Part shown: piece after piece, positions 44,057-49,043 of the stretch
Layout: every line of letters starts with the position of its first letter
How positions within the stretch are numbered: the stretch's first letter is position 1
NCBI GenBank assembly: GCA_020891255.1
Contig: BQFW01000013.1
Location: 62,001 to 126,000 of the forward strand
From: Entomortierella parvispora E1425
Taxonomy: Eukaryota > Fungi > Mortierellomycota
DNA length: 64,000 nucleotides
Reading direction: 5' to 3'
Made by a program: the position numbers and the translations under genes
The notes under the pieces: model-generated
What the model saw: the letters and a program-made list of their open reading frames with translations, nothing else
The model's database searches: none
What the model was told of the DNA's origin: nothing

Positions 44057-44124
44057 AGGTGAATAAATAGACTGATATTTTTTACCTGCACTCCTAAATG
44101 GAAAGGAAAGCGGCAAAAGGACAT

Positions 44125-47100
44125 TTATTGTGACTCCCACCGAGTCTTCTTTCTTGCTTCAGAAGCAATTTGGTCTCCTTGTGCATTATGTCTAGACGAA
44201 TCCCTTTGCTGATAATCACCACTACTATCGCGCTTGCCCAATTGGAACTGGTTCGCTCCAGTAGAGCTACCAGCTGCAAAGCTTTGGTGGTCCATGCCCA
44301 TGTTCATGGGTCCTCCACGTCCTCGACCACGACCGCGGCCTCCTCGCTCGCCACCAGGGCCACCACGTTTCGTCGCCAAAGCCTCGCGGCCGTCCGGTCC
44401 GACAGCTTCAATATTCGGTTCCAAGATCCTGACGCCACCTCGAATAGGCTCCATGGGTCCAAATCCTCCAACGACACTGTTGCTCAACCACCTGCGATCC
44501 GTGTCTGTCAACTTATCCAATGGGATCACACTGGTTCCAGTTGAATAATCGAAACAGTCTCGGGGACCGAAGCCGCATCCCCAACCGACCTTCATGGTCT
44601 CGCCTTGAACTTGCTGTTGATTCAACTCCCGTTTGGCGACCTCGGCTGAAGTTCGAGAGACCATTTTGATGAAAGCATTGAATTTGGCCTGATTAACCAT
44701 CAAAGTGGCAATTGGACCTTTTGGAGTGAAGATGGCCTCCAGGTCGCGTTCTGTGATCGTCGGGATAAAAGTACCGCCCACCCAAAGCGTCCGACTGATG
44801 ACTATTCAAAAGGAAACGCGAAACAACAAATAAAAAAAACCGTTAATAACTTGAATGGTGTAGGTGGTGCAGAAAGGGAGTCTTCATGAAAGTATCTCAA
44901 CTTCTTACCTCGGATCTGATCGGGTCCTACACTGGGGTCCTCTTCAACTGTAATGTTGGTTTGTGGCGCCGCTGCACCTCCTCCACCACCTCCGCGAGGA
45001 TCCATCGGGCGCGGCCCTTGGTTCCCACGACCCATACCGTTGGTAGCCCCACCTTCAGCCGTGTTAAAGCTTCCGTTCATAAAAGTCGCGGCCTGGGACA
45101 TGGGTCTTTGTGGAATGCCTGCATTCTGTTGGTCCATGATGCCTTGTGTGCTACCATTCCGCTGCATGCCGCCGGACAGATGAGGGGGTGGTGGCAGTGG
45201 ATGCACTTGACCTCCCGCAGTTGAGCCCTTGTTGGGTCCGGCTGTAGTCGAGCTTGCTCCTGGTGTTGGAGGAAGGGGCCAGCGTGTTGTTGGTGGCGGT
45301 GGCAGTGCGTGCCTGAGCTGTGGCTGCTGTGATGGTTGATTTGGTGGCGTTTGTGCTTGATCCCTGGCGGCCAGTCGGGAGTCAACTCTTGCACGAGGAT
45401 CGCGAGCCGGCAATCCAGGCGCCATTGCTGTTGTCATTGGAGCTCCTCCCACTGTTGCCCCTACTCCTGCTCCTGAAGCAGCGGCGGGTCTGGGAGGCAA
45501 TGGGTGCGTCATGGGTCCTCCAGGCACAAGTGGGACGGCAGGTGGTCCCGGGTTTGTACCTCCCGCCGTTCTTCCGGATGAGGATCCTCCAAGGCCAAAA
45601 GTATTGCTTGAAATAGGAGATGAAATTGCAGGCCCAACGGATGAAGTCATGTTGCTTTTGATGCCGCCGCCTCCACTCCTAAAAGAGGACGAATCTACTC
45701 CTCCAGAAGAAGACGAGGCGTGCGTCGGCATCATGCTATTATTATTGGGACTGATGAATGCTTCCTGATTCGTGGTATAGCTATTCGATAAGAACCCTTG
45801 CAGCTGCTGCAACACCGGGGGTAGATCCGTCTGAGAACTTCCACGGGGATCGCTGGGCACTTGAGGCGTCGTCGGCTGTGAGTAGGAGGTATTCATGTAA
45901 GGTGAAGCTGTCGTTGATGCTGTCGCCGCATTGACATGTGAGACTGTGGCCAGAAGTGTCTGCAAGGCCAGGGCAGAGGAAGGATCTGCGATACCGCTCA
46001 AAAACGCGCTCGCATTCGCAGTAGGAGCGGCTGGAGAGCCAGCAGATTTGGGCATCCTGGGATCTGAGGGTGCGACAGGAGAGTTTGAGTAAGGGGGGTA
46101 AATTCCAGTGGATGTCAGAGAAGTGGCGGGAGTAGGATAAGCAGTTGCTGCTGTGGATGCAGCACTGGAGGTATATTCACTTGTCAATGGCGAAATGTTG
46201 AGGTTGGTGCCATTCTGAGCGAGTGATGCAGCTAAGGATGAAATCAAGGAAGCTGCTTTGTCCGCCTCGCTTTGTTCAGGTTCTACATTATAAGCACCAA
46301 GGCGGGTTAAAAAAACGTCCGTCATTAAACGAAGCTTGATCTGACAACAACATTGCAAAGCCTTCTGTCCTTCTAGTTCTTACCTCTTTGAGGGGAGGGT
46401 GACCGCACAGGGGGCGTCGGTGGGGGAGGAGGCGTTGTTGATTTCTTGGTCTCCAGAAGAGGAAAGTAAGTCTTGCGGATGTTCTCGACAACAGAAGTTG
46501 AAAACGTCGATGACCGATCCCAGATCTCGACCACTCGCTTGACCTTTTCCTGTTCAAGTAAATCCAACAGCCAAAAGACACGAGACGATCGGGTACAGTA
46601 GACAGGCACGCGACGTCAAACACGAGTGGATCAAACATAGAGATATAGAAGAGAATAAAAGAGGGCACAGCGTTTAGATTCCATCCAGTCATTCATTTGC
46701 GGCTTCGTCTACGTAAAAAAAGCCTTTATTGCAAGGGGTGGTTGTGGTTGTTGAGGGATTGGCTGTTAGGTATTTTAGTCCTGTGCTCGTGAGGATATAG
46801 TCCCGTAGTTTAGTCCAGCGTAGTCCATTTCACGAGTCCATGTCGGTTTGTTGACATCCACGATCATACAAACACAGGGGGTAAAATGAAAGGTAGTATT
46901 ATTTTGGACTTTTCTTCCACAGTCATCCGCCTGGGTTAGAGGCAAGGATGGGCACTGGGATCTAGCCAGAGTCAGAGGAAAAGGTGTTTCTTTCACAACA
47001 TCCAGAGATACCTCTCTTCAACATAGTTATTTCGCCCTCCCGGTTCGGTCCGGTTCTGCTCCCGATCCCGAGAATCCTGTCATGGTAGCCATATGGCCAC

Positions 47101-47773
47101 CGTTGCTTCTTGACACCAATGTCGGCATGGGGGGGGGGGACTATCTTTCTTTGCTTAAGGCACTGAAAAATGAATATAGCTTTCGTTCAAATAGATCCAT
47201 ACCTTCTCCTTGTCTTCCTGAACCTTGCAAAACTCTGCAAACAAGGCCTCGATATTCTTTTCAAACCGCCCAACGTACTCTGCTCCAGTCAAAGACCCTC
47301 CTGATCCTTTCTGCTTGATAGAATGTGATGTCCTGCAAATCGAATCCAGTACGTACAATCCTGTCAACTTGTATTCTGGTACACATCTGGTGATAAACTT
47401 CTCCGTGAGATAGACGATATTTTTGTAGTGCTAATGATGAAACAATAGGAGAAAGGAGTCAGCATGTCGAGTCAACAAAAAAAAGCTCCACAAGGGCCAC
47501 AACCGAGATTGTAGGACAGGCACGAAAAGTTGTAGTCAACGAGATTCCAGGGGACTTGTGAGGACATGTGTGGGCCGTCAGTGTGACGAATAGAAGGTGG
47601 AAAAGAGGGAAAGGCGATGTGGTCCGATGGTGGTTTACCTTTGCAGACTTGATGGCCATCTTTGTGATTCGTTCAATCTTGGAGGCAGATGCACTCTTTG
47701 AATCAAACAGACTGTAGAGCTCCTTGTTGAAGTCGGTGACCTCTTGCGGCTCCTTGCTGGCGTCCTTGGACAT
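44125..47773 (-). CDS. NRD1: CID-RRM RNA-binding termination/3'-processing factor (Nrd1/Seb1/SCAF4-8 family)
   Basis: Exons 47773-47639, 47430-47203, 46549-46384, 46282-44909, 44801-44125. CID motifs SASKIERITKMAIK, YKLTGLYVLDSICR, KVKRVVEIW; RRM start VISRTLWVGG and MKVGWGCGFGPRDCFDYSTGTSVIPLDKLTDTDRRW. Confidence 0.93.
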
Positions 47774-48039: not shown

Positions 48040-49043
48040 ATGAGTGACACGGAACGCGGCAACAATGAAGACGACCTGTCGTTGCCAAAAGGCAAGTGCC
48101 GGCATCACTCGCTTCCAGGAAAACAGGAAAACGGGAAAACAGCGGCCTGTCTTGCATTCACTAACATGGCTCCTGTCCTTTTTTTTTTTTTTTTTTTTTT
48201 GTGTTGTCTTCCTCCCGCTTCCGGCTTGCTTCATGTCCATGCAGCAACGGTGCAAAAGCTTATTAATGAAATGATGCCCGACGACATTGCATGTGCCAAG
48301 GACACTCGCGATCTCTTGATCGATTGCTGCGTCGGTAAGGTGCTTTGTTTCTATCAAGCTTTTTTGCATGGGTCGCCCATGGGTCACGAATTCTTGTTTT
48401 TTTTGTTCCAGGCTGTTTCTAAACTTTTTTATTTTTTATTTTTTTTCAACCTTGAATAGAATTTATTCACCTGCTCGCCTCTGAAGCCAACGAAATCTGT
48501 GAGAAGGAAACAAAGAAGACGATTGCTGCCGAACATGTCATCACAGCCCTCAAGGTATTTGTCGACATTCTCACTTGCTGCCACACCCTTCTTCTTCCTC
48601 TCTTTCTCCATGATTCAAAACAGGAGAAGCAAAAAAGGACAAGTTACTACCAGAACGATCTGGGAATCGCAGGAAAGCGGGGCTTTTTGTTTGTCAACAG
48701 GAGCAGGATCAGGCGCAGGAGCAGAGATCACCCCAATCTCGGCAAATACACTAGCAACCATTCCATATCACAGGAATGAAGCCCTGTGGATTTACACTAC
48801 CTTTTTTTTTAACATCATGCATTTTGTTTTTGCTGCGGAATCGTGTAGGCACTCGGATTCGATGCTTACCTGCCAGAAGTCGAAGTTGTTCTTCAGGATC
48901 ACAAGACCCAACAAAAAGTCAAGGACAAGGATAAAAAGTCGGGAAGATTGGAGAATTCCGGGAAATCTGTCGAAGAGCTCTTGGAGGAACAGACCCGACT
49001 CTTTGCAGAGGCCAAAGAAAGACATCAAACCTTGCAACAATAG
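48040..49043 (+). CDS. NCB2: Negative cofactor 2 beta subunit (Dr1, histone fold), 143 aa
   Basis: Exons 48040-48091, 48245-48334, 48460-48554, 48849-49043; intron 1 is GC-AG. EDDLSLPKATVQKLINE, CCVEFIHLLASEANEICEKETKKTIAAEHVITALKALGF, EELLEEQTRLFAEA. Confidence 0.95.

Follow-up and report, generated by a model that had tools for sequence, protein, structure and literature searches.

Among factors that terminate transcription or process RNA 3' ends, it is a recurring pattern that the factor's own gene carries a conserved early poly(A) site or an attenuator. The vertebrate gene PCF11, which encodes a CID-containing RNA polymerase II (Pol II) termination and 3'-processing factor, carries a conserved poly(A) signal with conserved flanks (PAS1) in its 3 kb intron 1, and use of PAS1 results in a short non-functional isoform and less full-length mRNA (Kamieniarz-Gdula et al. 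2019, PMC6458999). In Saccharomyces cerevisiae, NRD1 limits its own expression by ending its transcript prematurely (Arigo et al. 2006, cited in PMC7471841 and PMC6458999), through Nrd1/Nab3 sites and non-poly(A) termination of the Nrd1-Nab3-Sen1 (NNS) type in an intronless 5' region. The genes of CstF-77 (CSTF3), Drosophila su(f) and Arabidopsis FCA and FPA, all 3'-end factors, each have a conserved poly(A) site, promoter-proximal or intronic, that is used for feedback (PMC7471841). Schizosaccharomyces pombe Seb1 promotes the use of cleavage sites and binds (A/U)GUA(A/G) located 50-100 nt past them (Lemay et al. 2016, PMC4949328), while human SCAF4 and SCAF8 bind upstream of early poly(A) sites and suppress them (Gregersen et al. 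2019, PMC6579486). The present analysis concerns a conserved AATAAA hexamer in intron 2 of an Nrd1/Seb1/SCAF8-like gene of the early-diverging soil fungus Entomortierella parvispora E1425, located on the minus strand of a 64,000-nt stretch of DNA (contig BQFW01000013.1, positions 62,001 to 126,000, assembly GCA_020891255.1) that is called the window and whose coordinates are used throughout.

This locus probably contains a conserved attenuator based on intronic polyadenylation, a counterpart by analogy of PAS1 in vertebrate PCF11. A sense-strand poly(A) hexamer lies within an intron of the factor's own gene, and the bounds of that intron are backed by spliced contigs from a relative. As in PCF11, the host gene encodes a CID-containing Pol II termination or 3'-processing factor, the signal and its flanks are conserved in an early long intron, and use of the site would yield a short isoform, here predicted to be non-functional. 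The differences are that the protein belongs to the Nrd1/Seb1/SCAF family with both CID and RRM, that the intron is intron 2, is about 0.65 kb long and lies inside the CID, and that use of the site and its dependence on the protein are predicted. NRD1 belongs to the orthologous protein family, and in both genes the host transcript would end early, although the signal in the fungal intron is of the AAUAAA type and GUA motifs are not enriched. The CSTF3, su(f), FCA and FPA proteins of animals and plants are unrelated, and the likeness to them is in the placement of a conserved poly(A) site. Seb1 has the identical domain architecture, but its downstream motif has no conserved counterpart here. 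The closest homologues in animals are SCAF4 and SCAF8, with action at poly(A) sites that are early or intronic, and the fungal protein is named 'SR- and CTD-associated factor 8' in several public records. The reading that we favour, with slightly better than even confidence, is that intron 2 holds a conserved cleavage and polyadenylation site (46730-46725, within a block at 46802-46625) that attenuates the factor, with homeostatic feedback as the most likely logic.

The gene model was rebuilt with five exons (Table 1) and introns 1 to 4 of 208, 653, 101 and 107 nt. In Pfam searches exon 2 alone matched the CID (E 4e-10, profile positions 30-96 of 120), the translation of exon 5 matched RRM_1 (E 1e-7) and Nrd1-Seb1_dom2 (E 2e-20), and the full-length orthologue P0016 contained the identical trio of domains with the CID at residues 14-144 (E 1e-19). 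The protein is a member of the Nrd1/Seb1/SCAF4-8 family with an N-terminal CID followed by an RRM and Nrd1/Seb1 domain 2. The exon 2/3, 3/4 and 4/5 junctions were backed at homologous positions by spliced transcript contigs (L006-L009) from a related Mortierella. The initial annotation of this sequence had described intron 2 as the longest of the four, 653 nt in length and splitting the CID, which the coordinates and the Pfam match both bear out, and had found no obvious branch site at the canonical acceptor at 46550, where indeed no CTRAC occurs within about 70 nt.

Orthologues within the Mortierellaceae were gathered by word searches for peptides of exons 2 and 5, by a cluster look-up and by contig look-ups, and their exons were mapped by tblastn. 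The genomic loci were from Mortierella antarctica (L003), Linnemannia gamsii (L004), a further Mortierella (L010), two assemblies of L. elongata (L011 and L012), Gryganskiella cystojenkinii (L013), Mortierella sp. AD011 (L014, partial), Lunasporangiospora selenospora (L015) and Entomortierella chlamydospora (L027), together with a partial contig of the closest relative of the window species (L001). A locus labelled Podila minutissima (L028, GCA_016098005.1) was rejected as an added lineage, its intron 2 being 99.3% identical over 593 nt to that of L003 (GCA_015679405.1), which suggests a single species, a mislabel or cross-contamination. Intron 2 sits at the same codon with GT..AG ends in all orthologues examined and its complete copies, from about five Mortierellaceae lineages, measure 593-1115 nt, so that a long intron 2 is a family-wide feature. 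CTRAC was absent from 46561-46552 in the window and from the last 30 nt of intron 2 in L003, L004, L011 and L013. Several genera have in common a motif, TTGAAY-like or TGAAC, that precedes the AG by 4-20 nt and may represent a retained sub-optimal branch site.

The hexamer was found at 46730-46725 as initially annotated, with GGC and seven T after it, and a sense-strand AATAAA was present in every orthologous intron 2 examined. Measured from the 5' splice site, the principal copy falls at 399-547 nt in every taxon; its distance from the 3' splice site ranges over 89-583 nt. Its context reads TTGCAATAAAGGCTTTTTTT in the window, L001 and Gryganskiella, CAGCAATAAAGGCCC in Entomortierella and Mortierella sp. 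AD011, GAGCAATAAAGGCC in Linnemannia, CCAATAAACTGC in Mortierella and CTAATAAAAGCC in Lunasporangiospora; since the flanks vary by lineage (GC-AATAAA-GGC, CC-AATAAA-CTGC, CT-AATAAA-AGCC), the hexamer is the invariant core. The 11-mer GCAATAAAGGC was the most widely shared 11-mer among the introns, occurring in six of nine taxa, once per fungal locus and in intron 2 only, while the largest number of taxa sharing any 11-mer in 300 dinucleotide-preserving shuffles was three, reached once. None of the 300 shuffles placed AATAAA in all nine taxa (per-intron chance 0.09-0.33), statistics that overstate independence because the lineages are related, and the intron 1 control contained zero AATAAA in 1488 nt across the nine taxa. 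A single AATAAA in 653 nt has a probability of about 0.2-0.27 and would by itself suit chance motifs in an ordinary long intron, but the hexamer recurs in all lineages within a block more conserved than the exons. These comparative data already contradict a chance origin, which we consider hardly credible; once the orthologues are compared, the occurrence of AATAAA is far beyond chance.

A second hexamer was noted further along intron 2, near the canonical 3' splice site, in several loci, as AATAAA or ATTAAA at position 740 in L004, 599 in L011, 789 in L027 and 1028 in L015, and as ATTAAA at 548 in L003 and 592 in L010. In Linnemannia and Entomortierella it falls 22-24 nt before the AG, inside ACAATAAATCGTYTGAAC in the former. 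A metagenome scan with TTGCAATAAAGGCTTTTTTT returned 11 loci (L016-L026), none of which encodes this gene by tblastn, and these were set aside as chance matches.

Conservation was not restricted to the hexamer. Between the window and L001 a block at intron 2 positions 401-578 (46802-46625), reaching from -70 to +105 around the hexamer, was 85-93% identical, compared with 80-88% for the coding exons, 54% and 62% for introns 3 and 4, and 40-64% for intron 2 on either side of the block. The Linnemannia pair peaked at 87-88% from -50 to +50 of the hexamer (exon 2 89%, intron 1 40%) and the Mortierella pair reached 71-80% in the 100 nt downstream of it (intron 1 36%). The block of the window aligned in part with that of Gryganskiella at 70-73%, and GGCTTTTTTT of the T-run region was present there too; beyond the block, introns of different genera were no longer alignable. 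In these alignments conservation of the site and its flanks exceeds that of the intron background; cleavage would be likely 10-30 nt past the hexamer. Open reading frames (ORFs) of the block were not conserved and its predicted RNA fold was not significant on either strand (z +0.56 and +0.49). Rfam, searched to E 10, yielded three matches, all sub-threshold and outside the conserved block, and an intronic snoRNA or other known RNA was rejected as a candidate; the lack of a structured or Rfam RNA element in the block would be expected of a linear processing signal. A hairpin after the hexamer (GGCTT...AAGCC) was also dropped, being confined to the window lineage and Gryganskiella with no covariation at hand. 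The motif CCTAACAG, a branch consensus with an AG directly after it, occurs in the block at 46763-46770 on the minus strand, 33 nt upstream of AATAAA, and is retained in L001 and absent from Gryganskiella.

It is conceivable, though rather unlikely, that the block is some other intronic element that merely contains AATAAA, such as a splicing enhancer or silencer for a long intron, a DNA-level enhancer or a protein-binding site. Constraint reaches about 70 nt before and 100 nt past the hexamer, further than a minimal signal would call for, the shared word GCAATAAAGGC has 11 letters and not the six of a poly(A) hexamer, and cleavage at the hexamer is itself a prediction. However, the hexamer alone is invariant over five lineages while its flanks change, its orientation and its spacing from the 5' splice site are maintained, T-rich sequence follows it as at real 3' ends, and some lineages carry a second AATAAA or ATTAAA later in the intron. 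Regulated poly(A) sites, PCF11 PAS1 among them, also typically have conserved flanks (PMC6458999). The intronic hexamer is very probably a functional poly(A) signal, an idea that the comparative evidence strongly supports.

AATAAA was 2.3-fold over-represented in the window (43 found against 18 expected from shuffles), and the 3' ends of transcript contigs L006-L009 fall 24-46 nt past AAATAAAA, itself preceded by ATATATAG; on these two grounds AATAAA marks real 3' ends in these fungi. The candidate signal of the full-length mRNA is less conserved than the intronic copy, as the canonical end had no hexamer in the first 260 nt or so past the stop in five of ten orthologues with a readable stop. 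In the window the stop codon sits within AATAAA (CAATAAATG, 44124-44129, minus strand) and a convergent gene follows less than about 100 nt on, so the full-length 3' untranslated region may be very short.

The simplest form of a short transcript would be an unspliced extension of exon 2. Reading through into intron 2 gives a predicted product of 136 aa with a truncated CID, and the read-through tail is not conserved, ranging from 1 to 76 codons among the orthologues. Transcript evidence came from the runs SRR6256862, SRR6256863, SRR6256866 and SRR6256867, as four Logan contigs (L006-L009) each about 2.1 kb long, and two further similar contigs were counted. These represent the mature mRNA of a species about 94% identical to L010, in which introns 2, 3 and 4 are precisely absent. 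All four start at one base, exactly 29 nt of exon 2 preceding exon 3, and continue unbroken through exon 3 and both later junctions. With k=31 the shared 29-nt start is the place expected for a fork in the assembly graph, where exon 3 and the intron both begin with G and the second path would read G followed by a base other than A, as the GT of the intron does. Exon 2 would thus exit to a second path common enough to fork the graph, with no fork entering exon 3, which fits transcripts ending in the intron and to which we give modest weight.

The initial annotation had combined the intronic poly(A) signal with a hidden terminal exon, and these two parts fared differently. In the proposal, exon 2 would be spliced to an internal acceptor at 46930 (or 46961) and the transcript would end at the same AATAAA, giving a 172-aa (or 133-aa) protein or an unstable RNA. 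The motifs themselves all exist at the positions given: the 9-mer CTAACCCAG is present at 46939-46931 and at 9983-9975 in a Bet v1 gene, exon 2 joined to 46930 stays in phase 0 for 51 codons to a TAA (46777-46775), and the second acceptor (TAG 46964-46962, with CTGAC) leads to a TGA after 12 codons. The 3' part of the proposed exon and its AATAAA also fall in the conserved block, and the assembly fork would suit a second exon starting with G and a non-A base, the exon at 46930 starting with GC. However, the acceptor is replaced in L001 by CTCTTGTATCCGG, which has neither CTAAC nor AG, the first 100 nt of the proposed exon are 40-64% identical to L001, which is the neutral level, 46953-46853 likewise diverges at the neutral rate, and a 1-nt indel in L001 breaks the 51-codon frame. 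The branch A lies 4 nt from the AG, which is too close, and that of the alternative CTGAC 7 nt from its TAG. Chance alone would put some 1.3 CTRAC into 653 nt, so that the acceptor-like motifs are within chance, and the 9-mer shared with the Bet v1 intron says little because a better-placed CTAAC, the likelier branch, lies about 30 nt upstream there. In the other lineages no acceptor-like site stood out as conserved at a set position; contig L001 begins about 10 nt downstream of the second acceptor. A coding role for the 51-codon extension was likewise rejected, as it has no Pfam match and its frame is lost in the closest relative. Across the Mortierellaceae, then, the AATAAA was conserved in every orthologue and the main acceptor was lost in L001. 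The poly(A) signal, with its invariant hexamer and a surrounding block more conserved than the coding exons, stands, while the hidden-exon part of the earlier interpretation is probably wrong, and splicing to such an exon is judged improbable.

Public annotations of at least seven Mortierellaceae genomes split this gene after exon 2 into a CID model of 123-149 aa (205 and 390 aa in two cases), with the remainder annotated as a separate RRM/Nrd1-Seb1_dom2 model or left unannotated. A full model, of 868 aa, was found only in Mortierella sp. AM989 (P0016). The split is attributed to the long intron 2. CID-only models ending just past exon 2 were counted in favour of intronic polyadenylation. The split CID and RRM models of this essential gene should be merged.

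Under the favoured reading, an intronic site attenuating the factor, Pol II would cross the long intron 2, where the 3'-end machinery could cleave the transcript and add poly(A) ahead of splicing to exon 3; the canonical acceptor of the intron has no consensus branch site. From the conserved signal we infer, rather than observe, cleavage at the site and an unspliced short RNA, which would comprise exons 1 and 2 with about 490 nt of intron and encode a truncated CID (about 136 aa) with no RRM. As each early cleavage would remove one full-length mRNA, the site would set the level of the factor. Since this protein family acts on poly(A)-site choice and termination, homeostatic feedback is the most likely logic, with either the protein or the general activity of 3' processing and termination acting on the site. 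That the protein itself acts, and with which sign, we infer by analogy and not from observation: the case is built on the recurrence of early poly(A) sites or attenuators in the genes NRD1, PCF11, CSTF3, su(f), FCA and FPA (PMC6458999, PMC7471841), and, as Seb1 promotes poly(A)-site choice, negative feedback by way of a site in an intron would be workable.

A real intronic poly(A) site could also operate with no feedback, as a constitutive leak, as a sensor of elongation or splicing speed, or as the source of a useful short CID-only protein. The missing conservation of downstream Nrd1/Seb1 GUA motifs would fit such a role, and PCF11 PAS1 also responds to elongation and splicing dynamics generally (PMC6458999). 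We nevertheless hold it to be unlikely, given that exons 1 and 2 end at about position 96 of the 120-position CID profile, leaving a short protein with the last helices missing, that the read-through tail of 1-76 aa is not conserved, and that a termination-factor host gene matches the recurring autoregulatory pattern.

Besides the relatedness of the lineages, several observations weigh against homeostatic attenuation at this site. GUA occurred 0-4 times per taxon in the 150 nt after the hexamer, with about 2.3 expected, and was neither enriched nor conserved across lineages. SCAF4 and SCAF8 suppress early sites, so that feedback could be of either sign; the same action in the fungus would make a positive and not a homeostatic loop. 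The fork argument rests on our understanding of how Logan contigs are assembled, and plain unspliced pre-mRNA fits it nearly as well. A search for sequencing runs with the whole gene of the window listed none of RNA, and a word search of the RNA runs with the L010 intron ORF for transcript contigs on the intron path returned only the query itself. The short public models are mostly ab initio predictions that fail on the long intron.

Individual motifs gave a similar picture, with no GUAG, UGUA or GUAA in the 150 nt after the hexamer in Linnemannia or Mortierella, and GUA(G/A) 13-16 nt past the hexamer only in the window lineage, Gryganskiella and Lunasporangiospora. The cluster of Nrd1 GUA(A/G) sites that would mark an NNS-type attenuator was not found in this count of GUA motifs. 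Among the papers searched there was no report of intronic polyadenylation in a Seb1/SCAF-type gene or of such self-limitation in Mucoromycota, and no study of alternative polyadenylation in Mortierella. Autoregulation of seb1 is not mentioned in PMC4949328, and a study of Aspergillus NrdA raises autoregulation only as speculation.

The features of the locus are collected in Table 1. The 5' half of intron 2, which is not conserved, includes a run of 11 C at 47129-47139 and a short direct repeat (CCGGACCGAACCGG-like) at 47042-47061, both on the minus strand. Upstream of the gene a run of about 22 A at about 48170-48192 (minus strand) lies within or adjoining a divergent CBFD_NFYB_HMF histone-fold gene, the position of which is kept in all loci.

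Table 1. Coordinates of the Nrd1/Seb1/SCAF8-like gene, of candidate signals in and after its intron 2, and of split public models at orthologous loci (window positions unless a locus is named)
Feature	Position	Strand	Remarks
Nrd1/Seb1/SCAF8-like coding region	44125..47773	-	five exons, product 859 aa, spliced frame open
Exons 1-5	47773-47639, 47430-47203, 46549-46384, 46282-44909, 44801-44125	-	rebuilt model
Intron 2	47202-46550	-	653 nt, GTATGG...AACAG, phase 0, within CID
Exon 2 read-through into intron 2	47155..47202	-	15 codons then TAA 47157-47155; ORF 47155..47367
Proposed second internal acceptor (CTGAC 46975-46971, TAG 46964-46962)	46962..46975	-	branch A about 7 nt from AG
Proposed main internal branch and acceptor CTAACCCAG	46931..46939	-	probably a chance motif
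Constrained block, candidate intronic polyadenylation region	46625..46802	-	A/C-rich upstream part, hexamer, T run, about 100 nt downstream
GCAATAAAGGC with AATAAA at 46730-46725	46722..46732	-	11-mer common to 6/9 taxa
T7 run 46721-46715, AC, GTAG 46712-46709	46709..46721	-	identical in L001
AATAAA over stop codon (TAA 44127-44125), candidate full-length mRNA signal	44124..44129	-	from sequence
Split model, L003	3630-4088		public annotation
Split model, L004	2922-5308		public annotation
Split model, L011/L012	5001-5596		public annotation
Split model, L013	5001-5694		public annotation
Split model, L014	5001-5462		public annotation
Split model, L015	4116-4603		public annotation
Split model, L027	4001-4629		public annotation
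Split model, L028	3390-5114		public annotation

The family-wide block of about 180 nt could serve as a compact system for the competition between splicing and polyadenylation in fungi with short introns. If cleavage at the site is confirmed, this would be a third independent case of self-limitation by early termination among CID-type factors, alongside yeast NRD1 and vertebrate PCF11. More tentatively, and with rather less than even confidence, we suggest that throughout the Mortierellaceae a contest between splicing and polyadenylation in the intron that splits the CID, tipped by the protein or by the machinery it steers, may hold the factor at a set level, and that self-limitation may be an old and recurring property of CID factors. 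Were this true, self-limitation would have been re-implemented with different signals, by NNS sites in budding yeast, by PCF11 PAS1 in vertebrates and by the intron 2 site in these early-diverging fungi.

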